Assembly: GCA_977016875.1 (NCBI GenBank) | Contig: CDRNST010000020.1 | Span: 5,952,001-6,016,000, forward strand | Length of the DNA: 64,000 nt | Source of the DNA: Pavona decussata | Lineage: Eukaryota | Direction of reading: 5' to 3' | Part shown: positions 9,736 through 42,517 of the stretch, in pieces | Numbering within the stretch: the stretch's first letter is position 1 | Layout of the letters: every line of letters starts with the position of its first letter | Notes under the pieces: model-generated | What the model was told of the DNA's origin: nothing | The model's database searches: none | What the model saw: the letters and a program-made list of their open reading frames with translations, nothing else | Translations under genes and position numbers: made by a program

Positions 9736-10200
9736 GTTTCCCTGCAAGGAGGCCAAAACCTGGGGGGGGGGGGGGGATCATTGTATTCCATGTGTACACA
9801 TACAAATATTGATGTATACATACAAGTTGATGTCATATCAAACATTTGAGCGCGCTTGAGGTTGTGGGAGTTGGTGAGGTGCTTCAAATATATGGAGAAT
9901 AGCAATTGTGGACACAGAACCACGTCTTTTTTTAGTTTAAGAAATTGACAGTTATACTTTTGGAATAAGAAACCATGGGACATTTGAAGCAGAAGCTTAC
10001 AGGACAGGAGAACTGATCCAAAAACATACAAGTCAATTGTCAAGTCAACTGACAGAAGCTGAAAGACCTATTTCAAAACGATGAGTTGTCAGACAAATAA
10101 CCCTCAGTGACTGAAAGACTTCACTAGCAGTGTTCCAGATGAGAGGGGAGTCTCAGGTCAAAAACTCTACAAGGTCAGCTACGTGACCCGACAGATCAAT

Positions 10201-12235: not shown

Positions 12236-12378
12236 CAGCAAATTCCTTGTTCTGAATTGCTATATGTACCAGAATTTGAGCATGTGCTGTGATTAGCCCA
12301 TCAAAGAAAGACTTCTGTTGACAGACCAATCATGGCACATACTCAAATTCTGGTACACAGAACAAGGAATTTGGTGCT
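12236..12378. mobile_element. Palindromic MITE-like element
   Basis: Arms GCAGCAAATTCCTTGTTCTG..GTACCAGAATTTGAG and CTCAAATTCTGGTAC..CAGAACAAGGAATTTGGTGC. Confidence 0.55.
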
Positions 12379-13679
12379 GAATTGCAGACATTACTAACCA
12401 GGGTTAGCGTACATCTGCAATGCATGCTGCAATTGGAAATAAATAAATTTTAAAACCCACAGAAAAATGGAACCACAAAGGCCAAAGAGCCAGACTATTT
12501 CCACGTTTCTCAATTGTACTATAGTTATTGACCAATTACTCCCTCCTAGGACAGCTAAATTCCTGCTGTATTTTATGAAAACAACCATGGTAATTGCCTA
12601 TTTTCTATGCCCTCTGTTCATATGTAAAAATGACGAAAACGAAATTTCCAGGGTAACACTTTTTCAAAACAAAATATGATTTAGCAACTTACATCACGCA
12701 TTCTCTCCTGCCTTCTGCAAATGATTCTATGTTCTTCTTCCTTTCCTTTTTCCGTCCTGGCCAAGGCATTGGTTAAACTCTTGAAGTATGTGGTAGCAGC
12801 ACCTTAAAATAGAAAATTAGTCATCCTGGGTTTATGAAAATACCATAAGAAGCAGGAGCTGAGCCACTGGGCCACTTGATATGAGACCATCAATAGTTGC
12901 ATGTATGTCATGTAAGTCACTTAGAACATATCGTTTCCAAAACTCTTCCCACACACATTTCTGGTTTGCACACATAATCAGAATTCAAGATATGTGTCAT
13001 GGAACACCAGCTCATTTTTGTTTTTATTTTTAAGTTTCCCCAATTACCCATCCTTAGATGAAAATAAAACTAGGGATTCCATCCATTCAAAACATTGGAA
13101 AAAACCACAGTAAAAGTTAACAAAATGACTACAGCCCAACACAATTATTTTAGAATTTCTCTTTTACCCTCCTAAAGCAGACAATGGCTTGGTTGGTTTC
13201 CAGTCTTCTTTTACTGTTTTTATATTACCGGTATATACATTTTTGTTCATGTTAACATGTTTTGGAGAAGTAAAGTTATGTTTATTTAAAACCAAAATGA
13301 ACCAGGCAAAATTTTCCAAGTTCAAAGTTGACACTAGAGCATTATATAAAATCTTGCCTGAAACACAGAGTTCCACTTGATTAAATATGCTTAATACTGA
13401 CATACTTTTCATTTCTTTTTTTTTTTTATTTATTTATTTATTTTTTATTTATTTAAAGCAAATTTAATTTACAGGGTACAACTTTTACACAACACACAGT
13501 AGTAATACGTAAACTACACGTACATTGATACTTGCGCAAACAATCTACACTACTAAAACAATTTTACATGCGCTAGTAAGGATGCATACATTACAATACA
13601 AACACTACTTGAATTAGGGTATATTAATAACATTGCTAATTTTATTACAGATAATCATTAACATCAGCAGCATATAAAA

Positions 13680-21891: not shown

Positions 21892-24800
21892 CTAACAATA
21901 ATTATTGAAGAGGGGCATTAAAGGATCCCACTTCTTCGAAGTAGGAGCTTGTTTGTAGGATTCAATTTTAAATTGGGACTTGAGGACCGCCAAAAACATA
22001 TTTAGTTGAGGGACCTTGTTACTGGTTTTGCAGCGCCATATGTAATGTCTGGCAATTAGAAAACAGAAATTCAATTGAAGAGCAAACTTTGTTGTGTCCG
22101 GCTTTAGTCCCAAAAAGATTGCGATGTCCTTCAAATAGTCGTGAGGTATAAGTTCACATTCAAGAAGTTTAACAGTCAGAACCCTCCAGAAAAAACTAAC
22201 TTTTGGACAATACCAGAAAAGATGAATAATATTTTCAGGAGCTTTACTGCAAAAAGAGCATTGTGGGTCTTGTTTGATACCAATTTTTGTTAGAAAAAAG
22301 TTAGTAGGAAGAATTCTGTGCAAGAGTCTGTATTGAAAGTTAATGAGGGTCGAACTTTTAGTGCCCTTGGATGCCAAGGTGTAAGCTGCTTTCCAATCAG
22401 CCTTACAACCTTCCTGGGAAACGATGGTGTTCCATTTTAATTGGCTTTTCTCTGGTGCATAGCTATTAAGAGAGACAAGTTTCTTGTAAACTATTCTATT
22501 ACCTTTGGAGCTTTCAAGAAATGAGTTAAGGAAAGAATCCGGTTTAACCGAAACATCTGTACTGGATTCATTTGGGAAATTTTTATTATAAAGACATTTA
22601 AGGGCAGATATAAGTCCACAAAATTTCAAGGGGTTTATTTGTATTTTATATAATTCAATAAAATCTTTGAAACAAAGAAACTTGCAAGGTTCTTTCATTA
22701 AATCTTTGACTTTTAAAATTCCTCGCAAAAAGAGTTCTTTCTCATAAATTGGCTTGTTATCAATTCTTATTAGCGAGTTATGCCATAAAGGCTGTTCAAG
22801 AAACTGTTGTTTTGTTTTTATAAGACCTTCAAAATTGACCTCAGACCAAATTTCTAACAGTTCTGTCGTGAAGTTGTTCTTTACTGGAAAAGTCTTGAGG
22901 GAATCAGTCTTGTTTAAATTGCCCTTAAAGATAAAGCTGCCGCCATGTTTTTCGAGCTCAAGGAAGACAATTTCTTTCCATTTTGCTTGGTTCAAAGTAT
23001 CCAGATACTTTCCAATCCAAGTAGTTTTTAGCGATTTGTTAAAAGAAGATAAGTCAACCATTTTTAGACCGCCATTCTCGTAATCATTTATCAACACGGT
23101 TCGTTTAATCTTATCACCCTTGTTGTTCCAAAGAAATCTATAAAAAATGTCATTTATCTCATTAATAAAACTTTGGTTTGTCGCAAGAGGTGTTAAAATA
23201 TAAGTGAGTTGGGATAAGACTAGACTCTTGATAACCTGAATTTTGCCAATTAAAGTTAAACGTCGGTATTCCCAACAGCTCAGAATATTTCTTATCTTGT
23301 CCACCTTTTCTGTATAATTCATATTTAAAGTGACAGCTGGGTCAGTAGAAATCCATACTCCAAGGACTTTGGTTTTAATCTCGGGCCATTTAAAATTCTT
23401 TTTGGGGGAGAGTTTTTCTTTCTTACCCTTCCTTGACCCGATCCATAGAGCTTCAGTTTTCTTGTCATTAAGTTTGAGTCCAGAAGATTTACCGAAGCTA
23501 TTAATTGTATCAAGGGCCGTGGATAAGGAATCTTTGTTACCGTTAAGGATCAGGGTTGTGTCGTCCGCGTATTGGCTTAATTTTATTTCTGTTTTATTCA
23601 CGGTGATTCCTTTAATGTTAGTATTAGCTCTGATAGCTTTTCCTAGGACTTCAACTGAAAGTATGAAAAGGTATGGCGACAAAGGGCAGCCTTGTCGAAC
23701 ACCTCTTTGTAACTTAAAGAATTTACTTGACCATCCATTGTTTAAAACGTAGCTTTCAATATTGTTATAAAACGTTCGAATCCAAGATATCAAAGAGGGG
23801 CCGAATCCAAAGTATTCAAGCGTACGATCGACAAATGCCCACTCAAGTGAATCAAAAGCTTTTTCGAAATCAATAAATAGTAACAACCCAGGGATGTGCT
23901 GTTCTGCTGCATAGTTTATGATACTGTCAATCAGTCTAATATTTTCTCCAATAAATCTGCCTTTTAGAAAGCCCGTCTGATCATTGTTAACAAGTTTTGG
24001 AATAACCTTCTTTATTCGATTAGCAATGGCTTTCGTAGCTATTTTAAGGTCACAGTTCAGGAGAGTTAAAGGACGCCAGTTTTTAATAAAGTGTGGATCA
24101 GCGTCTTTTTTTGGTATAAGTTTAATGATGCCTCGTCTCTGTGATACTGAAAGAGTCCCCTGATCATAGGCGTAGTTAAAGGCACTAATCAAACTAGAAG
24201 CTAACTCGTCCCAAAAGGTTTTATAAAACTCGGCTGGCAAACCATCGGTCCCAGGTGTTTTTTCTGAATCCATATCTTTTAAGGCTTCTAGGCATTCCTC
24301 TTCAGTTAAAAAACCTTCACAACTCGCGGCTTCGTGATAATCAAGGTGTGTGTCATTCTCGAGTTGAAAGAATTCTCTATCTGGAGGTATTGTGTTTCCT
24401 TGAGATGTGTAAAGGGTTTTATACAAGGTTTCACATTCTTCTAGGATTCCAGTTTCAGAGGTGATAAATTCGTTCTCGTTGATTTGGAGTTGACTTGTAG
24501 TGTTAAGTTTATAATGCCTCTTTTCAAGGTTAAGAAAGTACTTTGAATTTTTTTCACCTTCATTATACCATCTTGCTTTGCATCTTAGAATCGCCCCTTG
24601 AGTGCGCCACCTTACAAATTCCTCTAATTCTTTTCTGTACAATTCCAATTTTTCTATTAAGATATTTTTGTACTGTGTCGTGATCGATGGCAAGTCTAAT
24701 TCTTTTTCAAGTGTTGCAATTTTTTCTTCTAAAATATGTTCTCTATCATTCTCTTTGCGTTTTTTCCCAATCGCGTAACTGACGGATTTCTCCCGAACTT

Positions 24801-25710
24801 TCATTTTGATCATTTCCCAAAGAAGAAAGGTGTTAACTGAATTATCGTCTGTATATTCTTCCTTTGTCTGCTCGATAGTTTGTTTAATTATGTCAATATA
24901 GCCAGCGTCACTTAATAACGATACATTTAGCTTCCAAAAACCACGACCCCTTGGATTTGTATGCAATGATATGTTCAGTGTTATCAAGGAGTGATCTGTT
25001 TTAAAACCTGGTATGATATCGGCTGAGACAACATTACCCATGAGGTTTTGGGAGACCAGGAAAAAATCTAGTCTGCAATGAACTTCTGGTTGCTTTCGGC
25101 GCCAAGTGTATCTGCTAGTATCTGGATTCAAAAGTCTCCAAGCGTTAACAAGATCAAATTGTTCGGCAATCTCGCACACGGTTTTTCTTGCCTTGTTATG
25201 CGTTCTGGGGAGGCCACCTTTCTTATCTTTCTCTACGTTTAAAACAAGATTAAAATCACCTCCAATTACAACTTCGTCCTTTTGAAAGTCTTCAATGTGT
25301 TCAGCAACAGTTTTAAAGAAATCTGGATCATCTTCATTTGGGGCGTAAACATTTACCAGGGTTACGAGTTTTCCATTTGCCATTAAATCGCATATTATAT
25401 AACGTCCTGCAGGATCAATATAATTTTTCATGATTTGAAGTTCGAAATTGTTGTTGAATAGGATGCCTCTACCTACTTTAGTACTTGACGTGGTGCTAAA
25501 AAGGCATTTGTAGCCCCATTCTGTGGCCCATAGATCTTTTGTTTTTTCAGAACAGTGGATTTCTTGTAGCAAATAGATGGAAAACTGTTTGGAACGCAAC
25601 CAGCTGAAGGTTTCTCTTCTTTTTGTATCATTCCCAAGGCCCCGCACGTTAAGAGAAGCTATTGTAATAACATTCTTTTCCGTTTTGAAAGCAAGTGATA
25701 AAAGCGACAT
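21892..25710 (-). CDS. L1 ORF2p: APE endonuclease + reverse transcriptase + CCHC finger (1272 aa, open)
   Basis: NVRGL, LLQE, VYAPN, GDFN, RLDFF, TDHS; GVRQGCPLSP, QYADD; CSFC...HLFWYC. Confidence 0.97.
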   Translation of the reverse strand: MSLLSLAFKTEKNVITIASLNVRGLGNDTKRRETFSWLRSKQFSIYLLQEIHCSEKTKDLWATEWGYKCLFSTTSSTKVGRGILFNNNFELQIMKNYIDPAGRYIICDLMANGKLVTLVNVYAPNEDDPDFFKTVAEHIEDFQKDEVVIGGDFNLVLNVEKDKKGGLPRTHNKARKTVCEIAEQFDLVNAWRLLNPDTSRYTWRRKQPEVHCRLDFFLVSQNLMGNVVSADIIPGFKTDHSLITLNISLHTNPRGRGFWKLNVSLLSDAGYIDIIKQTIEQTKEEYTDDNSVNTFLLWEMIKMKVREKSVSYAIGKKRKENDREHILEEKIATLEKELDLPSITTQYKNILIEKLELYRKELEEFVRWRTQGAILRCKARWYNEGEKNSKYFLNLEKRHYKLNTTSQLQINENEFITSETGILEECETLYKTLYTSQGNTIPPDREFFQLENDTHLDYHEAASCEGFLTEEECLEALKDMDSEKTPGTDGLPAEFYKTFWDELASSLISAFNYAYDQGTLSVSQRRGIIKLIPKKDADPHFIKNWRPLTLLNCDLKIATKAIANRIKKVIPKLVNNDQTGFLKGRFIGENIRLIDSIINYAAEQHIPGLLLFIDFEKAFDSLEWAFVDRTLEYFGFGPSLISWIRTFYNNIESYVLNNGWSSKFFKLQRGVRQGCPLSPYLFILSVEVLGKAIRANTNIKGITVNKTEIKLSQYADDTTLILNGNKDSLSTALDTINSFGKSSGLKLNDKKTEALWIGSRKGKKEKLSPKKNFKWPEIKTKVLGVWISTDPAVTLNMNYTEKVDKIRNILSCWEYRRLTLIGKIQVIKSLVLSQLTYILTPLATNQSFINEINDIFYRFLWNNKGDKIKRTVLINDYENGGLKMVDLSSFNKSLKTTWIGKYLDTLNQAKWKEIVFLELEKHGGSFIFKGNLNKTDSLKTFPVKNNFTTELLEIWSEVNFEGLIKTKQQFLEQPLWHNSLIRIDNKPIYEKELFLRGILKVKDLMKEPCKFLCFKDFIELYKIQINPLKFCGLISALKCLYNKNFPNESSTDVSVKPDSFLNSFLESSKGNRIVYKKLVSLNSYAPEKSQLKWNTIVSQEGCKADWKAAYTLASKGTKSSTLINFQYRLLHRILPTNFFLTKIGIKQDPQCSFCSKAPENIIHLFWYCPKVSFFWRVLTVKLLECELIPHDYLKDIAIFLGLKPDTTKFALQLNFCFLIARHYIWRCKTSNKVPQLNMFLAVLKSQFKIESYKQAPTSKKWDPLMPLFNNYC

Positions 25711-27033: not shown

Positions 27034-30000
27034 GTGTTGCGCAAATGATTTGTGGAAAAGGCGGCCGGCTATCGAAGCAATGCTCACGCCGCCATCACTT
27101 GACCGAGCAATGTTAAAGACTCAATATTTTTGGTTTAACAGACATGGAGAACACTAAGATGAAGTGGTAGTCATGATATAAAGCCCTGTGTGACATTTAA
27201 TAAACTGTTAGAATTTCAGCAGGAATTTGATATTAGGTCATAAGTCACTTGGAGCCTTATTCCACACCATTCTTCCTTTTGCACTTCTGGCTTTTAGATT
27301 CTCTTGCTGTAAATTTACATGTGCCATATGCTGTGAACAAGGGCCTGCAATTTTCACATTATCTCATTTTTTACACAAGGTGTTACATGTATGTTCTTCT
27401 TTATGGAAGGGGCATTTAGAGAACACTTTTGAAATTATTGCTAGTATTTCACTGATTTAACTAAGGATTTTAACTCTTGTTCAGGCAACTACCTGCAACA
27501 ATGCTGGGTCTGACCTGGACAGTTCTGACTCCTGCACCTCCTGTAGTGATGATACAAGTGATACCGAGAGCCTTGTTGGTGACGAAGATCCTGATATGTG
27601 GAGTGACATACCAGAAGATCATCTCCTTCAAGATATTACAAATGATGAACCGCTTCCAAAGCCTAAGCAACATTAGTCACCTGTACAGGCAGTTACAGTA
27701 ATACTTCAGTGGTTGGTTTATTTTCTGTTATTCTGGCAACTTGGCCTGAAGATTATTATTCAAGCAACTTGCAAGATTAGCGACAATGGTCTGGAATGGT
27801 TGTTGCGCTTTATGTTTCAGTTTCTTCACATGGCAGGTATAAGCTGCAACAATGATTACATCCGTCAAATGGCCTTTATGTTCCCAAGTTCATTGTATCT
27901 TCTAAGGAAATTTATCATGTTTAAACGTGATAACTTTGTTAAGATGGCTGTTTGTTCAAAATGTGCATCACTCTACAACCTTGAAAACTGCACAAGAAAA
28001 GTAGGGGGACAGATTGTCTCAAACATTTGTTCCAACAAACCTTTCAAGAAAGGTAAAGAATGTGGAGTATCATTGGCAAAGAAAGTCATCCTGAGCTCTG
28101 GAAAAGTGTGTTTTTATCCACATAAACTCTACTGTTTTAACAGTGTAATTGATCAGGTTGAAGGATTGTTGAAAAGGCCAGGAGTTCCAGAAATGTGTGA
28201 ACAGTGGCGAGAACGTGAAGTGAAAGAGGACATTTTTGCAGATTTCTATGATGGTGGCATCTGGAAAGATTTTCTTAAATACAAGGGAGAAGTTTTCTTG
28301 GCTGTACCCAGAAACCTTGCCTTTGCAATTAATGTTGATTGGTTTCAACCTTTTAAGAGGAGAAAAGATAGATCCGTGGGAGTCATTTATTTAGTTCTTC
28401 TCAACCTACCCAGGGAGCAACGGTTCAGGTGGGAGAACATCATAGTTGCAGGCATCATACCCGAAATGAGCAAGGAACCTAAATCACTCAATTCATTTTT
28501 GGTACCAATTTTTGTAGATGAATTACAGGCATTGTGGAAAGGTGTCGAACTTTCAACCAGTTTAAGCAATACCCCTCTTACATACCGTGGTGCACTTCTT
28601 TCAGCGGCAGCAGACCTCCCTGCTATACCAAAGCTAGGTGGTTTCAAAGGATATGCGGCACATCGGGGCTGTTCAAAGTGTTTCAAGTACTTTCCTGGAA
28701 GGTTTAAAGACAAGACAGACTATTCTGGTTTTGACAGGGATACTTGGCCCTCAAGACATATTAGCAGTCATAGAATGCATGCAGAAATGGTACGAAAAGC
28801 TTCAACTCAAACACAGCGAGAGCGTCTAGCCACAAAGTATGAAGTTTATTACAGTTCTTTATTACAACTTGAGTACTTTGATGCAGTGAAATTTACAGCT
28901 ATTGATCCCATGCATAATCTGTTTCTGGGAACAGCAAAGCATGTGTTCAAACTATGGACTAAGAAAAACTTGTTAACAAAGAAAGATCTCAAGGTGCTAG
29001 AAGAGCGTATCCACTCCTTTGATGTTGGAACTGGTTTTGGTCGTCTTCCCCATCGTATTGCCTCTAACTATGGTGGTTATACTGCTTCACAATGGAAGAA
29101 CTGGACACTTGTGTATTCAATGTATTGTCTGCAAGGTCTACTTCCTGTATCCATTTGAGATGCTGGCAAACATTTGTCTTTGCTTACCAGTATTTATCTT
29201 CACCAGTTGTTTCTAAGGTTGACATTCTGAAGGCTGATAGGCTGTTTGTAAAGTTTGGGGAACGATTTGAAAGTTTGTAAGACACCAAACATGCACCTTC
29301 ATTGTCACTTGAAAGAATGCATTACTGATTGTGGACCAGTTCATGCATTCTGGTGCTTCAGCTTTGAGCGTTTTAATGGAATTCTGGGATCAATGCAGGT
29401 GAATGGAAGGTCAGTTGAGGTACAGTTAATGAGAAAACTTCTGGCTGGACGATTTGTCTGGGATGCTAAATTTCCTACCGAGTTCAAAGATACCTTTATG
29501 CCTCTTTTTACCCAGGAAAGGAGTGACACTGCTGAAAGTTTAATTGTGGAAAATGCTACTGCACTATTTAATAGTGCATGTTGCTTGAAGTTAGGAGACT
29601 TTCAGTGGAGTGATCTTACGCATGTTACTCTTCCTAGATTATTCAAGCACTTTGCTTTGGATCTTGATGAGCTAAGGGTGCTTCTTCACTGCTACAAAAC
29701 GTTGTATCCTCATGAAACAATTGAACTGCCCTTTTTGTCCAGGGTTGCTAGGAAGTATTCAAACATCATGCTTGGCACTTGAAAAGTTTGGTTCAAAGAT
29801 GGACTGTCGTAATCGGCGCTCAGCTCGAATAATGGCTTCTTGGGCTGCCTCTGATCGCTTGAATGATATTTCTACAGTTAGAAGACCGGGAATAGTAACC
29901 TTCTATATTGTGCACAGTGTAAAGATTAATGAAAAATTTGTTCAGCATGTGTTTGCTGTTGTTTGGTGGAATAAAGGTGATAAAGACCAAGATTTCTTTG

Positions 30001-31827
30001 GAAAACCTGTCCAGGTTTGGAAGTTTGATGAATATGAACCCTGTGGACCTGCTCTTTTTATGCCTGTGCAACGAATTGCACAAAAGTATGCTTGCTGTTC
30101 AGTGACACTACATGGACACACTAAATTAGTAACCAGTCCACTTCCTAGATTGTTTCATTAAGTTTGTGTTGCAGCAGAAGACCTATTGAGTTTAAAGGGG
30201 CTATGCCATGGTGATTGTTACATTTTTGAGCTCAAATAAGAACAAAGGATCTCTTAGTATTATTGCTTAAAACCAAAATTCCCCTAGTTCAAGATATCAG
30301 CTAAGCTATTTTCTCAAAAGGGGAAGATGACCCTGATCTGTATTTGGCTATCTTTACCCAGTACAGGAGAATTTCAAAAAGTTGGCCTCCTTGAAAGCGG
30401 GCGGGTGTCACAAAAATCTGGGACGGCTCTTGGTGAAGAGGGGCATGCTGTACATTTCTTGGTTTGGGGCTTGATTTGGAGCTTGTTGAGTAGAAACAGA
30501 AAGTTCATCCGATGTCACAGCACCAGTTGCTCCAGCGATTGGCCTTGCTGGATTTGATAGACCTTGCAGTTGCTGGTTTTTTTTTTTTTTAGTTCCTTGC
30601 ATTTCCCGGCTATGGACCTGGCAACCAGCCCTCCAGAGGGTGGAAACTCAAAGCTGCCAAACAGCGATATGTCCTTCAGGGTGCCAAGTTTCTCTGGTGC
30701 CTTTTGCCTCTTGATCATCAGTTTCCGGCAGGTGACACTCTTCATTGACTACACAAACAGAAAGCAAATTAAATTGAAGGGGAATTTGAAGGCGACATTA
30801 TCTTAAAATTTTCATGATAGGGTAATAAAAAGGCAGTCAACTCCAACGTCTTTGTTGCACTTAAAATACGCTTACTTTGTTCTGTTTATTACAACCATCT
30901 AGGGGAGGGAAAGAAAAAGAAAAGAGCCACAATGATATAAGTGACAGTACCGTACTACACGTATTTCAATGTCATTGATTTCTTCATATATAATCATGTA
31001 TACCCTATGTGATATTCCCTTATATGGTCATGAACATGTGCTCTCAGACAGAAGAGATGCCATGTTGGATTCTATGTAGAATGAAGTTGTTGTATTCATT
31101 TTTGTCCTGTAAATTAAAAAATTAAAAAAACAACAATATGCTAGTCCCTTTTTGTAATCAACCACTGATAAAGAGCCTGAGATCTCAGAACATAAAGTAA
31201 CATAAAACACTGGTAATCATAGTATAAATCATGATGTTATGCTACATCATGAACACAATTTAAACAATAACAGCAAACTATTCAAGATAAGAACAGGGAT
31301 TTTTCTATTTTTCTGATTTGACCTTGACTCCTTTACTCATACACAAAATGCTTCTATAAAATTCCAAAGGAAAACAAAAAATGGCCAATGCTTTCAAGTT
31401 ACAATCAGTGCAGTGAATAGTCTGTGTTAACAAAACCAGACCACTCTTTGTTGGTTTCCATTGATATGAAGTAAAACTTGCTGCATTTGACAGTGATAAA
31501 GTAGCGTGATAGTGCCCCTTGAAAATTTGTAAAATACAATTGATAAATCATTGTTTCTAGTTGCAACATAAGTAAAAGTGGCAACATATGCAGACGCAGT
31601 AATGTGCTTTTCATTAGATGCTTTCATTCCTAACAAAGGAACAAATGATCCACATGTTACTGCTTATCCATATGTTGCTAAGTGTCTCTAGTGTGAACCA
31701 TGCCTAAAGTTTGCTCAATAGCAGCTGACTCGTCCCCAGTCGTCTCTCTTGTCACGCGTGACGGGGAGCGTAAAGGGTGATGGGAAGGCGGAAAGGAGAG
31801 AGACGACTGGCAGAACCTGTTTTCAAG

Positions 31828-34572
31828 ATGGCGGACAGAATAATGGCGGACGGAGGGGGAATTTCTAATTTTGAAAATAGACCCTTCCATCATGCTTATT
31901 TGGATCGGAAGTTACCCTGCCCTCATATATCTTGCAGAAATGAGGCCGGTAAAGTGTTTTTCCAAGAGATAGGGCTCGCACAACATTTTAGAGTGAAACA
32001 CGCGGCCGTTTCCTTCGACGAAGAAAAATATAATCGAGAAGCGTGGCGGATGTTTAAGTTGTTTCATGGTGAAGAAACTAAGCGACACTTGGATTGGCTT
32101 TCCGCAGAATGCCTACTTCAGGTTTGTTTTTATATTACTTCTCTTGTATGTATGTATGTATTTTACGGTCTAGTTGGCAATGAATATTCATGGTGGAACT
32201 AGTTTTTGTTTATAATTTTCCCACGTCGCAGATTTTTGTTCAAAACTATACCCCTATTTCTTTTTTTTCCTTCAAATAGGGAAGTTGTTACGAACGTTTT
32301 ACTGTTGCGACTGCATATGAAGGTTGCCGAGTCCTTGAACTGGTGGCCAAATCTCCAAGAGAATGTGCCAAGCTAGCAGGCATCATGTTAATGCATTTCG
32401 GTCGACTGAACGCATATGGCAATGGTGCGCCAGAAGTAATCGAGGTCAACAAGCCAGGGCTGGCCGTCCACTTTAATGTCTGGTTCTCCAAACGATCTGT
32501 CAGTGGCAGTGGCAAGTTAATAACAATAGTGGTGCCAGAGGCTATTCTTATCAAACGGGTAGGCGATTCTGTTTCAGTGATACTTGAAATATTTATTTAC
32601 TAAAACAGTTGTCATCTCAGACCAAAATAGATGTCAGTCTTTTGCAAAAAAGGCACAACGTTTGACTTGTTTAGACCAATTAACTGCAGCCAGGGGAAAA
32701 AAGTCCCGCAGATAGGCCTGTTGTTTGCACATTTCTGGAACCGATCCAATAAGATCAAAAGATGGACCTGATATTTAGTTTTAGATATACCCAAGAATGG
32801 TTCCAGAAATGTCCCGTGAAAACACCTGGACCATTTGGATTTCTCCATGTAAATGTATCTTATGTAAATTTATCTTATCATGTAAATTTATCTTATCATT
32901 AATAAGGGTTGCTTTCCTGCAGGACCTTACAGTGGATTCACTACAGGACTGTACCATGCCAGTTGATATTCCAGGAATCGACATTGAACTCTCTGGAAAT
33001 AAGGCACTACACATACTAAGAGGAGTATTTCATTTACAACAATTCAGAGCAAGTCAGCAAGAGGCAATAGAAAGTATTTTAAATGACAAAAATACTGTGC
33101 TGATCATGCCAACAGGTGGTGGGAAAACCATTTGTTATGCCATTCCTGCCCTGATGAAACAGAAAATAACTGTTGTAATTTTTCCCCTGTTGGCACTGTT
33201 GCTTGATCAGGTCGAGCGGATGCGGTCGCAAGGACTCAATGTCTGCTATTTTATGTCTGACATGGATCCTACTGAGAAAGAGAATATCATGCACAAACTT
33301 AATTTGACCCCACCAGAGTACACTTTCTTGTTTCTAACTCCAGAAACTGTCTTGTCACCAACTGTGTTTGAATTAGTGCAAAAATTGTCTGCAAACAATC
33401 TTCTTAATTTTTTAGTTATTGATGAAGCCCATTGTATCGACACATGGGGTTTTCATTTCCGTCCCGCCTATGCAGAGTTATGGAAACTTGGAACTTTTGG
33501 TCGTCCTATTTTGGCAATGACTGGCACAGCAACGAGACGGACAGAGGATGTCATTTTACGCAATTTGAGATTGTCAACAGAAACCAAGGTGATTCGCCAG
33601 TCTGCAAATCGTGCAAATATATTGTATCATGTATTGAACAAAAAGTCAGATGGGAAAGTTGCACTTGTTGAACTCATAAAGAAAGAATATCCAGAGCAGT
33701 GTGGTATTGTCTACTGTGCTGAAAGGAGCGAGACTGTGGATGTTGCCTACTGTCTTCAAACAGTGGGAATCAATGCTGTCTTCTTTCATGCTGGCATGGA
33801 TGTCATTACCAAACAACAAACTGTTGAAAGATGGAAATCGGGAACTGCCCATGTCATGTGTGCTACAGTGGCATTTGGCATGGGTATCGACAAGCCAAAT
33901 GTTCGATTTGTTATCCACCACAGTGTGCCAAAGGATTTGGAGAGTTATGTACAGGAATCTGGAAGGGCTGGTCGGGATGGCAATGATGCACATTCGTACA
34001 TCCTTTTTCGGTTTGAGGACAGAACAAAACATTTGAGGAACATTTCGTCTCTTCCCAACAGTGACCGCAAAATCATTTGTCTAGATGGGCTTAATGATGT
34101 GGTTAAATACTGTATAACCCCTGTTTGCAGAAGGCAACAAATAGTGACCTACTTTGATGGTAGTGATATCTCTGGCAACCCATGCAACAAGTCATGCGAT
34201 GTCTGTTCTGCAAACAAACATTTTGCCTCTGTGGACCACAGTGAAGATGCAATTGAGGTTATAAATTGCCTTGAATCAATGCAGCAACTTCATGAGAAAG
34301 TCACAACAAAGTTTTTGGTGCTAACCCTTCGAGGGTCAAAGGCAAACACTGTAACTAGTAAGGGATTTCAAAATGTAAGAGAGTATGGGGAGGGAAAAAC
34401 TAAATTTAGCGAGAAGGAATTACTGAAATTCATACAATACTTAATCACTGAAAGTATTTTACATGAACAGCTGCGCCCTGTAAATGAGAACAGTACCACG
34501 CCTTATCTTGTGAAAGGAACCAATGCTAACAAACTCATCAGCAAAGAAATCAGGTTTTCTTTCTATAAATAA
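31828..34572 (+). CDS. Transposon-borne RecQ-family helicase with N-terminal C2H2-like finger (3 exons, ~740 aa, intact)
   Basis: Exons 31828-32121, 32280-32558, 32923-34572, all GT-AG and phase 0. CPHISC...HFRVKH; MPTGGGKT, DEAHC, WGFHFRPAY, ATVAFGMGIDK, QESGRAGRDG, CRR...CNKSCDVC, then an RQC winged-helix-like region. Confidence 0.93.
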
Positions 34573-34753
34573 TTACGTGTTTTAATAGTGAAATTTTGTC
34601 TTGAGGCTTAGCGAAAAATGATAATGACATAAGATACATTGTAATTTGTATTCTAATTTCGTTTGTTGTTTTTGTTAAAGCCTGAGAGCCACGTTAAAAT
34701 GTACATATTTATTTCATTAGCAAGTAGGCACCTTTTGTGCCAGCTGGCATAAT

Positions 34754-34924
34754 AGGCCATTTCCGAGTTGTTTTGAAACTCATTATTAAAGTGAGGCTTC
34801 GTGCATAGTTTTTGTTAAGAAAATTAGTTTTCATTCATATGCAAACAATACTAATTTTCTTAACAAAAACTATGCACGAAGCCTCGCTTTAATAATGAGG
34901 TTCAAAGCAACTCGGAAATGGCCC
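34754..34924. mobile_element. Palindromic MITE with AT TSD, inside AcademH
   Basis: AT|AGGCCATTTCCGAGTTG ... CAACTCGGAAATGGCCC|AT, nearly a full hairpin. Confidence 0.85.
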
Positions 34925-36964
34925 ATTGAATGTGTGAATTAACTAGATACAATATACTTGCTTCACAGGCTTTGACTCAAGTGAGTGTGTACAGTTTCCT
35001 CCCATCACTTCTAATGCGAAAATATTTGATTTTTAGTAACGTACCCCGTCCAAAGAACGCTTGTTATGCTAATTTACCAAATGTTAATGTTGTTGCTGTG
35101 TGTACATTTCTTGAGAGGAATGGTCATTCTATGTATCTGGGCTTGAGACCAGCTGGAAATATGATTTTCCAGGCGGATTTAAAAACTGCCAGGGGTGTCC
35201 TTGCAATTGACCACTGTGGTCGAGATATGAGCTCTCTCCGCAGAGAAACCAGAGCCTTACTTCATTCTCACTGACTCGACCTTGAGACCTTGAGACCTCT
35301 CATCCCGCAGGATTACCACACTAATTTCTCACACCCCTTCTTCCACATCCTCATCCAGTTCATGGTTGCTTGGGTTTTCACCCTCTGGGAGAACATGAAA
35401 AGTGCTATACAACTTGCGCCCAAAGTTTTCAGTCACTTTGCTTTTGCCCTTCTTGTACACGTCTACCAGTGTGTTGGAAACCTTGCCATTTTCTTCACCC
35501 TTGTTTGAGAGCTTTGGAATGAAGTCTTGATCTCCAGGAGGATCTAAGAACTTCTGTTTGAGGCAGAACCACATTCCCTGCAGTTGATCTGGAAAAGGGT
35601 CTTGCTCACTGTGGTGAGTAGTGGGATGAACATTGAAAGCCTCGTGCCCTCCAAATGCATTTCGTACTGCTCCAAGGCAATCCAAGTTGACTGCAAGTAG
35701 CTTGAGAACTTCCACACTTGAATGTCCTAACAATAACATGAAGGAAAAGTTGAATCTATTCTTCTCTGGGGGGGGGGGGGGGGGGGCATAAGAGAGCATT
35801 ATTATTTTTTGGAAAAGAGGGTGAGGAATCTGGCTCTGTCTAATTTTCCATGTGATCACAAAGCTCCTGCTTCAAGATGATATTCATGTCACCTGCATCT
35901 TGTGACAAAGACTTCAATAGGAGACCAGTCTTCAGGGCCAATTAAAAATAAGAATGTGTAACTTACCTGATGCATAATTCTTCAGTGGTTGCACCAAGTA
36001 CGCCTCCACCCATTCATCAAGTGCAATGTTGTGACCGTCCTTCCCTTTCACATTAACAGAACAGTTGTGCTGCAACACCTTCCGGGTCACACTAGGCCAG
36101 GCTGCGATAAAATTTACAACATGGACAAAAGCTTCTGTCCAATAATTGCGTTTCTGCAGCTGAGCAAACAGTGGTAGCATTACCATCCAAACAGCTTCAC
36201 GACCAACACCATCGCCAAACTTCACACTGGACAGGTACAATTCTCTTAAGGGACCAAAGAGGGTAAATAGCTGGCTATGGTAACGGAACTGGACTTTTCT
36301 GCTCTCAGATTCTAACCATTCCTTGAAAGAACTCAACAACAGTTCATGATGGTTTTCATTAGTTTTGTCATGAGCAGCAAGTGAGGCCTCGGATGGAAAC
36401 AATTCACTCTCTTTAAAGGTCTGCACTGCAGCCAGTCCATAGGCCATTGCCACATCCCGTACTGCTTCGTCTATTCTGTTGAGGTTCTGGTGCTGAAATT
36501 TCTTGTCTCCAAATGCATCATCTGTTACCTTGTCTCGCTTCATCACAGTCTGTGCGACACACATGAATCCCCCAGGCCCCATAGTTTTCTTGCACACCTC
36601 ATAAAGGTAACCTTAGAAATAAAAGAGGAAAACGTCTTAAATTTGAATGGTTCTTGCAGCTGGACAAGTCTCCTATTCTTTACCATTTCAATTTGATATT
36701 TTGGATTAGCAATGCACAGTATGAAAATTAATCCTTTCTGGCTTGCTATATCAGTGGATAATGCCCTTGGCTGAGACTGATGGTCCTTACGATTTGACAT
36801 TTGCCCTTAAAGCTTCACATTTTTTGGACCACCACATCGCGGGTATTGTCAATATACAAGCCGCCTGAAGGAATTACTGTCTTCGCTAAATACCCAGCTT
36901 TCACTTGTGGAATAAATGTCAATCATCATACAACTGTAGCCAACCTACAGAAACCATTTTTATA

Positions 36965-37079
36965 CTGACCCTTCCTAAGTCATCTCTCTTGTTGGGAAAT
37001 GCAAAGCGCGAAGGGTGATGGGAAGGAAGAAAGCGTGATACGTCATGCGAGAAAAGAGAGACGACTGGGGCCGAGTCAG
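36965..37079. mobile_element. 115-bp MITE of the AcademH family, in a transposase intron
   Basis: Ends are decayed copies of the host TIR; subterminal motif GCGCGAAGGGTGATGGGAAGG; flanks ATTTTTATA / GTTTTTATG (7/9). Confidence 0.8.
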
Positions 37080-39674
37080 GTTTTTATGGATAAATGGTTT
37101 GTGTATTATGATTGTAATCGAGAATTGGAAAAAGGGATTATAGAGTCCAGGCTGTCTGTACTCTTGTGAATCTAGCTTAAAGGCATACACCAGAAAACCA
37201 ACACAGACTCAATTCCCGAGAATGAGTCAGGTTAGTTGTTTGATAGTTTGCATGTGTCTTACCTCTAGCATGTAAATCTCCAGGAACCTCTGCTGCCCAT
37301 CCATATGCTGACAAGGACTTTTCTTTCACGCTTCTGGTGATCTTGTTGGTGCCCTGGTCACCAACAAGAAGTGTTTTGCAACTCTTTGAGCCTCTGCTGT
37401 ACACTTTGTCTTCATCGTCTGGTCCAGGAAAATGATCAGCAACAGGGGGATCAGTTGTGGCAAGTTCTGTTGCCTCCCAAACTTTCAAATCCTCTTCATC
37501 CTCTTGAGCCAAACTGTTTTTGAGTAATTGGCTGATATTAGCCAGTCCCAATTTGTCTGCAATTTGTTTCGGTCCTGGTACTGACGAGAAAAACTCGTTG
37601 TTGCAAATTGCAAAATTCTCCAGTAGAATTTTCACCATTTGTTCATCTCCCTTTAAAACGGCTAATGTCAGTGGAGTTGCTCCGCACCTCTCCTTTACAT
37701 TGGGATTAATCCCAGCATTTATCAGGGTCTGTACTAATGGCACATTTCCATTCTGAACAGCATGGTGCAGTACAGTGCATCCATGATGATCTGTGGCATT
37801 CTCCCACTGTTCACGGTTGTTGCGCAGATATTGCTTAAATTCAACAGCAGCTGCTGCATCAACTGATTGGTTTGCTTGCCACATTTTGTCTGTTAGTTTT
37901 GTAAAAACTTTCTTAAATTTCCCATCAATTTTCTGGAATGTGCTTGCATTAGCCATGTTGTTTGACTCATCTTCAGCTTCTCTGTCACCGTCTTCTTCCA
38001 AAATTCCTCTGTCAACATCAGGGATTTGTTTTTCAACACGTGCCAATTGTTCTTCAAGCTGAACCATTTGATTTTTATGTTCTTGAAGCAAGTAAAGAAA
38101 CTCGTGATGCTTCCTCGCAGCTTCGATGTTGAAGGTCTTCAGATTCTCGTCATATGGCAAAACCACTTTCGAATGATTGCACGGCATGCCAAATTCTTTA
38201 CCAAAATGTTCAAGTACTGCAGCTGTTCCAGTTATGGTGGCATTGTTTTCAATGGAAAGAGGCAGGGTGATCGTTTTACTTTGTCCTTGGTTGTTCTTTT
38301 TGGGCACTGGTTGTTTAAGCTTGTATTTCTTCAAGTTGCTTTTGCTGAGGTCCTGTTTCTTCAACCAGGTTTTGAACTCGTGTTCACTCATGGCAGCAAT
38401 GGGTTTCTCTGACAAAGGGACTGAATTAAGACCAACATCAAGCAGCTTTGTGAAGTATTGATCTTTAGCCTTTTCAAACACTTCCAGCTGGACAGGATTT
38501 GAATCTAAAAACAACAGAAACTGCCTTTAATCAATGCAAATGTACAAATTTGCCATGTTCATTTAAAAAATTGCCACAGAAAGTATAATAATACATGTAA
38601 TTGCTAGGGCTGTGCTCTAGCAGTGACCAGGACTGCAGACTTCTAGAAACCCCACATTTCTTAATAAAGAGTCTCTCTGTGATTGTTTTGATGGCACACC
38701 CTTGGATGATACACAATTATTGTACGTCATGTACTTATATTAAATTAATTGACAAATTTCTGAAATAAATAAATAAATAAATAAATAATATATTGAAATT
38801 AGAAATTTGAGGTTAATAAAGGGAGAAGAGCCATGGAAAAATCCCTCAGGTTCACAAAAAAGTCAGAATTTAACACTTTATTTCAACGTACCAATGAGGA
38901 GATCATCAGCAGTTAACAGTGAAACTGGTCTCTGCGGTTCTTGCGAGGCTTCTTTATCAACTAGCAAATCCTCAAATGCATCGCAATTGGGAATGATGGC
39001 ACCACGGATAGTGAAGTTCCACATCTTTGGTGCTGTAGACCTGAATAGTCTCTGATGGCGTGCTGTACCTCTGTACATGTTGATGTTGTCCATCAGCAGC
39101 ATAACTGGAATTTCATTTGGAGCATGTTTCGCCAAGATTTCTGTGTAATTTTCCAGTCGTTTTTTCAAGTAATTTTTTCTGCAAAAAAAGGGTTAACATT
39201 TATTAGGTCATAGTTAAGTAAGAAACTGTGGGCAGTGTATGTGTTGTGATTTAATAGAATTTTTCAAGCCGGTTTCAAATCAATTTTAATTTTCCCATGT
39301 TAATTACCATAACCTGGAACAAAGGGAAATAAAATTAATCTGGTTTGTAAAATTTCGAACCACATGTGCTGATTCAAATATAGTGTAAGTAATAATCCTG
39401 ACTCATCTCCAGTTATCATTTTTGTTGGATCAAACAAACAAGGTATGATGAGAACCATCAGCTCTTTATTCACTAACACCTGTGCCTCCTAACAAAATAG
39501 TCATTTTACAGCCAAACTTTTACAGCCACCATTTGTTTGCATTGTTACTCGCCAAGACCAGGGTCTCTCCAGTCATGTTTCATATTAAATAATCATTTCT
39601 ATCTAACCTCAGGTATTGGACATGTTCTTACATAATGATTGAGTGATACCATACGTGTTGTCCCAGTACTTATA

Positions 39675-39809
39675 TATTTTTTGTGGTTCAATTTTATCCT
39701 TGGTTTAAATTTTATTTCCCTTTGTTTTGAGGTATGGTAATGTATGATAATGAGTTTAAAACAATGGGAAATAAAAATTAAACCAGGGATAAAATTGAAC
39801 CACAACATA
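39675..39809. mobile_element. Palindromic MITE
   Basis: TTGTGGTTCAATTTTATCC ... GGATAAAATTGAACCACAA. Confidence 0.75.
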
Positions 39810-41166
39810 TTCAATACTTGTTACAGAGGGAAGGGGTTTTTACTTACATAGACACACTTAATAGTGAATAATTATTTCTAAATAAAAAGGTAACTCACAT
39901 GGAATCATAATGAAGAGACAACCCAATTGACTGGAGCATGTTGATGAACTGTTTCCCTGCCCCATATGACATGCAGAGTAGGCCAAATAGAAGTGGGAAG
40001 TCGTTGCGACATTTTGAATTTCTGACATTCAACAAGAGAGCCAAGGCATGGTGTCCACGGAGCACTTTCTGTTCATTTGTTTTTTTAACATTTCTTTCAC
40101 CAGTAGGGTTGCTAACAACCAAAGTCTCCACGATATTCCTCAGCAAGGGGCATCTTTCCTTGACAGCATCAACAAATTCTTTAAACATTGATGTGATGAG
40201 TTCATCCACATCTGAATATTGTAAGCTTCTAATACCAATGTTGCAAATGCCTTCCAGGATTTTAATTTCTTGGGCAATTCGTTCTGTTTGCTGTATGGTC
40301 AACTTTGCATTTTCAACATCCTTTGCTTGGGCCAGTTCTGCCTCGAAAGCAGTCAGCAGTGTCTTCATAAGACGGTCTCTTTCTTGTGCCTCTCGAGTAA
40401 ATTCTGCCAGGAGCACTTGAACTTGTAGCATACCCTGAGTGGCAATGGATAACTGCTGCCAGATTTGTGTCATGACTTCTTCAGTTGCTTGAAGTCTCCG
40501 CTGGATATTGACCATCTCAGCTGTGAGAAAGAATTCCAAAGATAAATGTATATTTAAAAATAAAAACTGAAATTTTTTAGCTACAACACCAAAGTTTCAA
40601 TACATAAACACATCATGTGCTGCAAGAAGTTTTGTACCCATGATAAAGAGTTCCTGTTTTGCATGACCCAGTTCAGATCACCTGTAACAGCAATGTCACA
40701 TTTGCATTTACATGTACTTGGGTTATGAAGGAAAATAGAGTCAAAATTTAGAAAGTATCAGGAATATCTTTTTAAACAATGATAGGATTAAATCAATGGC
40801 ACCAAACAATAAACTTTAATATGTGTTTACATCACCCATTGTTCATTGTTTGGTACAAAAATTCGTCAATAAATGTTATACAGTACCTGGCAATCCAGTT
40901 GTACACTCAGCATTAGTGCAAGATATAAAATGAGACTTGGCTTTTAGATTGACGTAAAAGGTTCTACAAATGCAGTTAAGGCATCATAACAATTTACCAC
41001 AACTTGCATTAATATCAATTACAAATATTCAATAAGCTGGAAAGAAAATTAAGTAGCACTGCATGTAAGAGGTTTATAACAAAAACAACAAGGCCACAGC
41101 TCTGGGCAAAATCAGAAAATATAATTAATGTAGGTGTCATTTCATTCACACTCCACTCTGCACAGG

Positions 41167-41274
41167 CTGACCCCAGTTGTCTCTCTCAGTGAGAAGAGGA
41201 GTGATTGGAAGCATCACTTTTTGTGCTGCCCTGACCACACTTTCTTTTAAGAGAGACGACTGAGGACGAGTCAG
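41167..41274. mobile_element. Second AcademH-family MITE
   Basis: CTGA-CCCCAGTTGTCTCTCT ... AAGAGAGACGACTGAGGACGAGTCAG; TSD not clear. Confidence 0.7.
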
Positions 41275-42060
41275 CCTACACGCCATGTTCCAGCAGGAGA
41301 GTGGTCGTGTAGTTTTGTACTCCAGTTGACACTTACATACTATAGACTATGACACAAATTGTCACCAATTCATCAGTTGTAACCGTTAGCATCATTTTAG
41401 AATACTTAAGACAGAATTAACCAACACTGTGAAATGAGAAAAGCTCATTTGAAACCTTTGTAACTTTATCCGCCCACAAAATAATTTCAAAAGATGAAGA
41501 GACAATACATCGAGACAAAAACTTCCTTTGTTAGCAATTTTCGGAACTATGTTAAACAATCGCCCATCTTTGTAAAGAAATCCCAATGGAAATGCTTTCT
41601 GGCCAATTGGAACCTCAGATTTTTGTGAGTAATTATGCAAATGACAAGGATACGTTCCATCTTCTCTCCTACGCCTGGTTGATACTGTAGGAAATACACG
41701 TTTCAGGGTGCGTGTAACTAATGGTGCTGATGCTTCATCAAGGGCAACATAGGCCAACACAATTTCCCGACTGACTTCACATCCTTGCTCCTCCACAAAT
41801 CCAGTAGTTAAATAGCACTCTAGTTTGGAGCTTCTTTGTTTTACTTCTTTGCCAGATGGTTTACCACCTGAAACATTGGAGCAAGATTAGCCTGGTCACT
41901 TATTTACACTGAGTTCTGATAAGGCAAATAAGACAAATAATCCATGGTACGAGTATTGTCTGAATATTATTCATTGTTATTTCTGTCACATTTAAATTTC
42001 ACACCAGTTATATTTTCAATGTCTCAGGTTCTGTGAACTAAGAATAATACAAATTAACTG

Positions 42061-42177
42061 GGCTGAGTTGCTCGAAGCATGGTTAGCGCTAACCATTAGT
42101 TAAGAGGTATTAAAACCTATAGGTTGTTATGGTAATTAACCCGGGTTAGCGCTAACCATGCTTCAAGCAACTGGGCC
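42061..42177. mobile_element. Harbinger-like MITE
   Basis: Inverted arms AGTTGCTCGAAGCATGGTTAGCGCTAACC; CTG on both flanks. Confidence 0.8.
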
Positions 42178-42252
42178 CTGGGCTGTAAAATTTCAAACCA
42201 TAAAAAAGTTATTCCTTCCCCAGTCTCTATTTTCAGTTATCATACATTAAAC

Positions 42253-42517
42253 GAATACTGGTCAACTCGCCTACGTGCAAACTCGCCTATGCCAACTCAC
42301 CTACGCCTACTGGTTAACTCGCCTACGTAGGCGAATTTAGAACATAGCACGCTTGTTTAGGTTTATGGATTAAAGAACGAGTTAGATAGAACATAAAGTT
42401 ATTTAAAAGGCATACATTACTTGAGTGAACTCGCCTATGTCAGGAAGAGAAGTCGCCTACGTAGGCGAGCTGACAGGTTGTAGGCGAGTTTGCACGTAGG
42501 CGAGTTGACCGGATACC
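42253..42517. mobile_element. MITE with internal ACTCGCCTAC repeats
   Basis: Inverted arms GGTCAACTCGCCTACGTGCAAACTCGCCTA; flanking direct repeat CATTAAAC (TSD 6-8 bp, ambiguous). Confidence 0.75.

Follow-up and report, generated by a model that had tools for sequence, protein, structure and literature searches.

A three-exon RecQ helicase gene carried by a probable AcademH-type DNA transposon of Pavona decussata

Gene model and splicing

In the genome of Pavona decussata, a three-exon gene encoding a RecQ-type helicase is located in the window, which denotes here the whole stretch of 64,000 nucleotides that was analysed (GCA_977016875.1, contig CDRNST010000020.1, positions 5,952,001 to 6,016,000). 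The exons and introns of this gene are arranged as follows.

31828–32121, plus strand: exon 1, 98 aa, with the start codon, a Cys2-His2 finger and then a long helix (residues 65–96)
32122–32279, plus strand: intron 1, 158 nt, GT..AG, phase 0
32280–32558, plus strand: exon 2, 93 aa (279 nt), a compact beta-beta-alpha-beta-beta-beta domain of unrecognised family
32559–32922, plus strand: intron 2, 364 nt, GT..AG, phase 0, including the ATG at 32797
32923–34572, plus strand: exon 3, 549 aa and the stop codon, with the RecQ helicase core, zinc module and RQC winged helix

When the three exons are joined, their 98, 93 and 549 codons are translated into 740 aa with zero internal stops, and all junctions are read in phase 0 with both introns bounded by GT..AG, in agreement with the three phase-0 exons and approximately 740 aa proposed in the first-pass annotation. 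The same annotation had stated that the ORF track begins inside an intron, and the long ORF listed for this region does start at ATG 32797, within intron 2. The start codon is conserved, with no in-frame ATG further upstream in the relatives C15, L080 and L081.

Transcript evidence was obtained from Logan contigs of four runs belonging to three studies, the runs being presumed RNA and the contigs carrying no information on strand, ends or expression level. Both proposed junctions, 32121/32280 and 32558/32923, were found as exact joints in assembled transcript contigs of the three studies. The first appears as 32119>32278 (GT..AG, a cut shifted by +2 giving 32121|32280) in runs X1, X3 and X7, and the second as 32557>32922 (GT..AG, a cut shifted by +1 giving 32558|32923) in runs X1, X3 and X4. 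Additionally, a single 866-nt contig covers all three helicase exons, and contig depth is 0 over 32572–32839, inside intron 2, in all four runs. As the genome yielded no intron-less DNA copy of the gene, these joints are most simply explained by spliced RNA. The bases 33939C and 34390A of the expressed copies are not those of the window copy. The three-exon gene is intact in the window copy, while its family is spliced and present in transcript assemblies.

The shorter exon 2 of two NCBI coral models, P0006 and P0046, was rejected as the true structure: at the Desmophyllum locus all of exon 2 is present, though interrupted by a frameshift, and in the transcripts the exon has its full length of 279 nt. 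Prokaryote-style ORF calls, and even NCBI models, cut this helicase gene short, which is a point of practical relevance for annotation.

The only other full-length copy in the genome (C90, 99% identical) is located on another contig. Two positions distinguish the copies.

32371–32377, plus strand: indel hot spot in exon 2, with the frame kept in the window; the stretch is shorter by 4 bp in C90 and in the deletion derivatives
32110, plus strand: substitution of T for C, changing Arg to Cys at residue 94, found in the window copy alone among the genomic copies compared

The earlier description of the gene as intact consequently holds for the window copy, which is open, and not for C90, which is broken in exon 2 by the 4-bp shorter stretch; the frameshift of the Desmophyllum copy lies close to the same site. 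The 4-bp difference had at first cast the window copy as broken; this was rejected because the window frame is kept across the site by divergent paralogues, by L084/L085 and in the transcripts, and is hence the conserved one. At 32110, C is present in all other genomic copies, and coral relatives have Arg at residue 94.

The RecQ core

Each exon was analysed on its own. In exon 3, the following features were located by Pfam or by direct reading.

33049–33549, plus strand: DEAD (Pfam)
33520–33528, plus strand: motif III, reading T-G-T (direct reading)
33661–33981, plus strand: Helicase_C (Pfam)
34018–34206, plus strand: RecQ_Zn_bind (PF16124), E 1.3e-9
34228–34557, plus strand: RQC (PF09382), E 2.2e-12

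Motifs 0, I, Ia, II, III, IV, V and VI are all present and align with those of BLM-type and bacterial RecQ helicases, an aromatic-rich loop is located between motifs II and III, and the four cysteines of the zinc module occupy columns that are invariant across the clade described below. Pfam and the motif table thereby confirm the complete motif set, aromatic loop, cysteine zinc domain and winged-helix-like C-terminus that had been read from the sequence, and on these features the protein belongs to the RecQ family (SF2). The TGT reading of motif III was likewise correct. It is found in 19 of the 28 clade sequences, with TAT in 7, whereas the BLM-type and bacterial RecQ helicases compared all read TAT; TGT is typical of the clade and nothing peculiar to the window copy.

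The best solved relative of exon 3 is the BLM core (E 3.8e-84, residues 29–547), and the chains of RECQL1, RECQL5, WRN and RECQL4 score below it. The window protein has motifs 0–VI, aromatic loop, four-Cys module and RQC winged helix in common with BLM/Sgs1-type and bacterial RecQ helicases, at approximately 35–39% identity and alignable over residues 29–547 of exon 3. In contrast to them, the window helicase is transposon-encoded and has its own N-terminal finger and alpha/beta domain, while the N-terminal domains of BLM are absent from it and Pfam returned no HRDC match.

The host element

The helicase gene is located, together with a convergent transposase gene, inside the terminal inverted repeats (TIRs) at 31725 and 43283.

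31716–31724, no strand: left target-site duplication (TSD), 9 bp, CAATAGCAG, identical to the nine bases at 43284–43292
31725–31752, plus strand: left TIR, 28 bp, a perfect match to the right end; genomic copies begin aligning at 31725
34751–34927, no strand: palindromic MITE-like repeat in the spacer between helicase and transposase, matching itself on both strands
35329–38514, minus strand: 3' part of the convergent transposase gene, with DUF6589 pieces and ankyrin repeats, continuing towards 43 kb
43256–43283, minus strand: right TIR, pairing with the left end
43284–43292, no strand: right TSD, 9 bp, directly outside the inverted end

The element, 31725–43283, is thus 11.56 kb long; its 28-bp inverted ends match perfectly and its target duplication is 9 bp. 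Within the transposase, Pfam identified DUF6589 in 35932–36594 and 37177–38511 and Ank in 37177–38511. Elsewhere in the genome there are internally deleted derivatives, some holding pieces of the helicase gene, and many short MITEs consisting of a TIR pair. For the MITE-like repeat in the spacer, a first look gave over 1200 candidates genome-wide, and the repeat accounts for a contig depth spike of several thousand.

DUF6589 is taken here to be the core of Academ transposases, the assignment resting on layout and TSD. The helicase is very probably encoded by an accessory gene of this element, a young cut-and-paste DNA transposon of AcademH type. DUF6589 is also mentioned for Puccinia, a fungal genus with known Academ elements. 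The AcademH group (Kojima 2020, Mob DNA 11:15) is cited in PMC10045372 and PMC10799480. AcademH elements likewise comprise two genes, for a DDE-type transposase and a DEAD/Helicase_C helicase, and TIRs, and the 9-bp TSD of the window element falls within the 9–10-bp range given in PMC10045372, which cites Kojima 2020. The finger exon, exon-2 domain, RQC and ankyrin insertion of the transposase are features seen in the window element.

That a host RecQ paralogue merely came to lie between transposon ends, or that the gene has been domesticated, is barely credible. Its introns, the purifying selection and the presence of transcripts would suit a host gene; against this, it is located inside perfect TIRs and a TSD, another contig has a second copy of the entire element, helicase gene included, at 99% identity, fragments of the gene are left in internally deleted copies, and its relatives retain this neighbour in other genomes. 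With its verified gene model, perfect ends and TSD, the locus represents a clean and apparently active example of a helicase-bearing transposon.

Relatives and evolutionary history

A maximum likelihood (ML) tree was constructed from clade helicases, BLM/Sgs1-type proteins and bacterial RecQ, with RECQL1, RECQL5, WRN, RECQL4 and the Repbase/fungal AcademH helicases outside its sampling. The window helicase is placed deep within a clade of 22 rows (UFBoot 99, SH-aLRT 97), separate from BLM/Sgs1-type and bacterial RecQ, and the helicases of this clade show 40–85% identity. In 7 of the 8 clade members located on long contigs, a convergent DUF6589 gene adjoins the helicase; downstream of the helicase in L084 no DUF6589 match was found, and three distant representatives are on 2-kb contigs that hold no neighbour context. 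Judged against the DUF6589-linked helicases, the window protein appears to group with AcademH-type helicases, the outcome that the first-pass annotation had itself named as refuting its reading. The phylogeny proposed in that annotation has thereby been carried out for the BLM-type and bacterial comparisons.

The gene structure is also shared across considerable distances. Three matching exons, delimited by GT..AG introns at equivalent positions (intron 1 among them), are present in the C15 paralogue (46% identical), L084 and L085. Per-exon dN/dS values of 0.06–0.15 (0.06–0.15 in exon 1, 0.06–0.09 in exon 2), which are rough because dS is saturated (>1), point to purifying selection on all three exons. 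The three-part layout and the pairing with a convergent DUF6589/ankyrin gene are of long standing in a separate RecQ lineage carried by transposons. One candidate full-length relative, P0194, was rejected, as its 192-aa N-terminus is unlike exons 1 and 2 and the protein is BLM-type with HRDC.

It had been suggested that the protein is closer to cellular RecQ1/BLM-type enzymes than a minimal core and was captured independently. The first part stands insofar as the core, zinc module and RQC are complete and BLM is the best solved match; the window protein was rejected as a BLM/RECQL1 orthologue, being without HRDC and, in the tree of clade, BLM/Sgs1-type and bacterial sequences, outside the BLM/Sgs1-type group. 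A recent independent capture of a host RecQ1/BLM-type gene by the element or its close ancestors could draw on the BLM match and on the full zinc and RQC extension in place of a bare core. Additionally, word, profile and exhaustive phmmer searches added no fungal or other distant clade members, which is compatible with an ancient capture at the root of a lineage confined to animals. Such a recent capture is nevertheless very improbable, because the helicase is nested in a transposon clade, linked to a DUF6589 transposase in 7 of the 8 members on long contigs, whose distant families share its intron positions and N-terminal exons even at 40–47% identity. Furthermore, BLM-type and bacterial RecQ fall outside the clade with approximately 300–330 bits, compared with at least 378 for clade members, and HRDC and the BLM N-terminal domain are missing. 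The helicase is accordingly most probably a long-standing accessory gene of the transposon family and not a fresh host capture. RecQ-like ORFs of coral assemblies are often transposon genes rather than host repair genes.

The N-terminal module

The finger encoded by exon 1 has the arrangement C31-x4-C36-x16-H53-x4-H58 (31918–32001), with a C-to-H spacing of 16 (14 in C15) compared with x12 in the classical C2H2 pattern. These four ligands, conserved in intact relatives, agree with the C2H2-like finger described earlier. Neither exon 1 nor exon 2 has a Pfam match even at E 10 or a PDB sequence match. The AlphaFold2 (AF2) model of exon 1 has a pLDDT of 77, and its best Foldseek row is a C2H2 pair with an insignificant E of 3. 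The exon-2 model has a mean pLDDT of 91.3 and a pTM of 0.80; the description of exon 2 as a beta-rich domain of 93 aa without a known family thus agrees with a confidently predicted fold that lacks a Pfam or PDB relative.

Searches with exon 2 returned little. A Foldseek comparison of the model with the PDB, as the first-pass annotation had proposed, produced no match at E <= 0.001, a PDB-wide VIA search reached a best Z of 5.8 (PurS), which is under the usual chance level, and an ESM Atlas feature search gave noise (<= 0.82). A word search identified only five close relatives. Homologues of exon 2 are located upstream of the helicases in C15, L080, L081, L082, L084 and L085, and finger homologues likewise in L080, L081 and L082; both the finger exon and the exon-2 domain recur upstream of helicases with just 40–47% identity.

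The exon-2 model can be superposed on an ESM-Atlas model of the archaeal chromosomal protein MC1 with TM 0.66/0.64 over 76 residues (rmsd 2.4), and the strand-helix order of MC1 (PF05854) is equal to that of the predicted domain. The MC1 HMM (PF05854) has no match in the genome or in 15 exon-2 homologues, and the 50 top-scoring rows of the structural search across the PDB, which extend down to a Z of 3.6, contain no MC1 chain. Membership of exon 2 in MC1 was rejected, as the HMM tests were negative and the fold-level TM of 0.66 was the sole support; the model-based likeness serves only as a lead. The conserved N-terminal module is possibly the only part of the protein not described before, and the exon-2 domain, predicted to be well folded and unmatched, provides a small, defined target for structural and binding work.

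Proposed function

Few eukaryotic DNA transposons have been studied as little as the helicase-bearing Academ elements, whose helicase is not known to have an established role. The overall explanation that best fits the locus is probably that of an accessory AcademH helicase, for which a role in transposition or repair would be reasonable. The predicted 3'-to-5' DNA helicase may work with the DDE transposase of the element on transposition intermediates, opening either the element ends or the target DNA, while recruitment to element DNA or to the transposase would be the task of the N-terminal finger and exon-2 domain. According to PMC10045372, TSDs are 9–10 bp in AcademH and 3–4 bp in AcademX, a difference linked there to the presence of a helicase versus a nuclease, and opening of DNA by the helicase would fit the long TSDs that distinguish helicase-bearing Academ elements. 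The prospects of this mechanism are rated slightly below even.

A post-excision function, in which the helicase steers donor-site repair to synthesis-dependent strand annealing from the sister copy and thus restores the element and raises copy number, is rather unlikely. BLM promotes such repair at P-element gaps in Drosophila, the RecQ/BLM-like engine carries an RQC winged helix, a module used by RecQ enzymes on forks and junctions, and the gene is conserved alongside a cut-and-paste transposase. On the other hand, the host presumably has BLM already, and repair would leave the link between helicase and TSD length, as given in PMC10045372, unaccounted for. The locus is well suited to production of the protein, with which one could ask whether a RecQ motor sets the long TSD or aids donor repair.

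With regard to the transposition mechanism, the finger, long helix and exon-2 domain could together form an undescribed adaptor of transposon RecQ helicases, coupling the RecQ motor to the DDE transpososome via MC1-like binding of bent or branched DNA or via docking on the ankyrin insertion, an idea that is speculative and quite unlikely in this specific form. Accessory RecQ helicases are also carried by the DNA transposons KolobokH and Kolobok-1_CCri, according to PMC9587614. These elements belong to another transposase superfamily; in contrast to KolobokH, the window helicase is encoded by a separate gene, convergent with that of the transposase.

Gene structure and host element

In the window (contig C20:5952001-6016000), the RecQ-type helicase gene, read directly from the sequence, consists of three exons joined by two GT..AG introns with phase 0 at every junction; the coordinates below give a clean translation, in agreement with the three phase-0 exons proposed in the first-pass annotation.

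Features of the element and its helicase gene (window positions)
31725-31752, + strand: left inverted end, first 28 bases, perfect inverted repeat at the right end
31828-32121, + strand: exon 1, 98 codons, translated without a stop
32280-32558, + strand: exon 2, 93 codons, translated without a stop
32923-34572, + strand: exon 3, 549 codons plus stop
43256-43283, - strand: right inverted end, perfect inverted match to the first 28 bases from 31725

The mechanical ORF list opens the long frame at 32797, in intron 2, so the earlier remark that this track begins within an intron was correct. The ATG at 31828 is the conserved start; three diverged relatives contain no further in-frame ATG upstream in the homologous frame.

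Alignments of other genomic copies start at 31725, and the same nine bases, CAATAGCAG, are found outside both ends; together with the perfect inverted ends, they define an element of 11,559 bp (31725-43283) with a 9-bp target duplication. This duplication falls within the 9-10 bp of AcademH, unlike the 3-4 bp of AcademX, according to PMC10045372, citing Kojima 2020. The opposite-strand ORFs downstream of the helicase, matching DUF6589 and ankyrin repeats in Pfam, are the transposase gene; its putative assignment to Academ is based on layout and target duplication. Besides the window copy, the genome has one that is full-length (contig C90, 99% identical across the helicase region) and five with internal deletions, as well as many short elements built of inverted ends.

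Transcript support

The stretch is present, whole or in part, in 19 public runs of one organism, of which four runs from three studies were compared as Logan contigs; that these runs are RNA is a guess, and such contigs carry no strand, end or expression-level information. Both junctions predicted in the first-pass annotation are matched exactly in contigs of the three studies: 32119>32278 (GT..AG, cut +2, equivalent to 32121|32280) in runs X1, X3 and X7, and 32557>32922 (GT..AG, cut +1, equivalent to 32558|32923) in X1, X3 and X4. One 866-nt contig covers exon 1, all of exon 2 and the beginning of exon 3, and depth across 32572-32839 in intron 2 is zero in all four runs compared. Spliced RNA is the reasonable source of these contigs, because a search of the 602-Mb assembly found no intron-less DNA copy of the helicase gene. 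Expression is shown at the level of the helicase family: the contigs carry 33939C and 34390A, as in C90 and unlike the window copy. In X1, two contigs run leftwards into non-window sequence from loose ends at 31723, on the edge of the element, and at 31764, 40 bases within it; that individual may have the element, or relatives with its TIRs, elsewhere in its genome, or the contigs may come from read-through transcripts.

Helicase core and N-terminal exons

The exons were searched and folded one at a time. Exon 3 matches DEAD, Helicase_C, RecQ_Zn_bind and RQC in Pfam, with no HRDC domain, and its best solved match is the BLM core (residues 29-547, E 3.8e-84), followed in order by bacterial RecQ, RECQL1, RECQL5, WRN and RECQL4. 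Motifs 0, I, Ia, II, III, IV, V and VI, the aromatic loop and the four zinc cysteines are present, so that Pfam and the motif alignment bear out the core architecture first described, including the winged-helix-like C-terminus. The reported TGT in place of TAT in motif III is indeed read at 33520-33528; within its own clade TGT occurs in 19/28 members and TAT in 7/28, while all BLM-type and bacterial RecQ compared have TAT. By sequence comparison, TGT is a tolerated habit of the lineage, not peculiar to the window copy.

Exon 1 contains a putative finger of spacing C31-x4-C36-x16-H53-x4-H58, whose two histidines never vary and whose cysteines intact relatives retain; its moderate model (pLDDT 77) predicts a finger-like part leading into a long helix, and no significant profile or fold match was found. 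The model of exon 2, built from a 15-row alignment, is confident (pLDDT 91.3, pTM 0.80) and predicts the order strand, strand, helix, strand, strand, strand. The description of exon 2 as a 93-aa beta-rich domain of no known family therefore holds: Pfam, PDB-sequence and Foldseek searches gave no match, and VIA scores were at chance level. The top hit of an Atlas fold search is a model of the archaeal chromosomal protein MC1 (TM 0.66/0.64, 76 residues, rmsd 2.4); the MC1 profile matches neither the genome nor the 15 exon-2 homologues, and the best 50 rows of a PDB-wide structural search contain no MC1 chain, so an MC1-like fold is treated only as a lead from modelling. The one portion of the protein that may be new is this conserved N-terminal domain without a structural match.

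Relative to the window copy, C90 and the deleted copies have 4 bp fewer at 32371-32377, which first suggested that the window copy might be the frame-shifted one. Four observations speak against this: diverged paralogues traverse the site in the window copy's frame, the relatives L084 and L085 align to all of exon 2 (residues 1-93) in a single frame, transcript contigs show no gap there, and the Desmophyllum locus has a complete exon 2 split by a frameshift close to the same site. Their agreement identifies the window copy as intact, and the site seems to acquire indels readily. The frameshift accounts for the shortened exon 2 of the Desmophyllum model at NCBI (P0006). At that locus (L079, Desmophyllum pertusum MU826387.1:263407-286700, gene at 10001-13294), NCBI protein OS493_031770 is modelled over a decayed copy of the same family and skips frameshifts in exons 2 and 3.

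Origin of the helicase

A word-based search yielded about 45 relatives at 40-85% identity, the closest being from corals (Desmophyllum, Porites and Paramuricea), beyond which scores fall to those of BLM-type and bacterial RecQ, about 35% identical; a profile search contributed no further members. Run exhaustively against 1.84 billion representatives, phmmer put only about ten above the cellular-RecQ plateau of 300-330 bits. One long candidate above it (P0194) was rejected as a clade relative, being a BLM-type protein with HRDC.

The 45-row maximum-likelihood tree, with which a quick tree agrees, places the window protein inside a 22-row clade (ultrafast bootstrap 99, SH-aLRT 97), with eukaryotic BLM/Sgs1-type and bacterial RecQ as separate groups; the order of these three is poorly supported (79/44). 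Of the eight clade members on long contigs, seven have a convergent gene for DUF6589, in most cases along with ankyrin repeats, 0.4-2.3 kb downstream of the helicase; the eighth has none on record. The diverged paralogous family on contig C15, whose helicase is 46% identical, has the same three exons and GT..AG introns at the same phase-0 positions, as do L084 and L085 in exons and intron positions. Upstream of the helicase, finger homologues occur at loci L080 and L081, and exon-2 homologues at L080, L081 and L082 (small HMM, E 5e-14 to 4e-18). In pairwise comparisons, all three exons have dN/dS values of 0.06-0.15, with dS saturated.

The supported clade, the linkage to DUF6589, the common exons and introns and the low dN/dS together establish, at the level of sequence, an old, selected, transposon-linked lineage of which the N-terminal module is an ancestral part. 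The independent capture suggested in the first-pass annotation is not supported, given this nesting and the N-terminal module and introns common to distant relatives; this is the outcome which that annotation had named as refuting it. Of the comparison set it had listed, the tree covered BLM-type and bacterial RecQ but not RECQL1, RECQL4, RECQL5, WRN or the Repbase and fungal AcademH helicases, so that one ancient capture at the root of an animal lineage may have taken place. Transposon-borne RecQ is a known general theme, since KolobokH transposons also carry RecQ helicases (PMC9587614), as the window element does.

Many other RecQ-like ORFs in the genome are intron-less (about 410-490 aa, 25-39% identical; e.g., C82:1856985-1858385, C8:4368898-4370295, C80:1362414-1363814 and C204:55445-56845), some as part of 1000-1900-aa open frames. 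They group far from the AcademH helicase clade, and other repeat families probably carry them.

Proposed role

The gene is intact, of RecQ type and conserved together with a DDE-type transposase gene. Its protein is predicted to unwind DNA 3' to 5' and could tentatively be placed within or beside the transpososome, where it would act on the target or on the ends of the element, with the finger and exon-2 domain as putative recruiters to DNA or transposase. The main alternative, that the helicase would take part in repairing the excision gap, is argued by analogy with BLM, which acts in the repair of P-element gaps in flies, and appears rather unlikely. For action at the transpososome, the sole outside hint is the association of helicase presence with long target duplications reported in PMC10045372.

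Other copies and neighbouring repeats

The deleted copies (C364:26583-28017, 132427-133731, 288500-289935 and 397050-398485; C114:2735961-2737398) lack window 32686-33005 and end near 33496. The four on C364 are spaced roughly 105-155 kb apart, which suggests segmental or tandem duplication carrying along a dead copy.

At 34751-34927, in the helicase-transposase spacer of both the window copy and C90, lies a MITE-like palindrome about 177 bp long that matches itself on both strands. A first look at the genome gave more than 1200 candidates for it; transcript assemblies reach contig depths of several thousand over it, and several miRNA hairpin models from plants and animals match it below threshold. 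The same spacer, at 35117-35185 (-) and upstream of the 3' end of the transposase, gives a weak type-P1 twister ribozyme match (33.4 bits versus a gathering score of 67.2, E 1.3e-4).

Outside the element, a Transposase_21 (CACTA/EnSpm-type) ORF lies just to the left (27713-29155, +), and a LINE ORF of 1271 aa with endonuclease and reverse transcriptase is also to the left (21892-25710, -); as these are separate insertions, the region is a nest of transposons.
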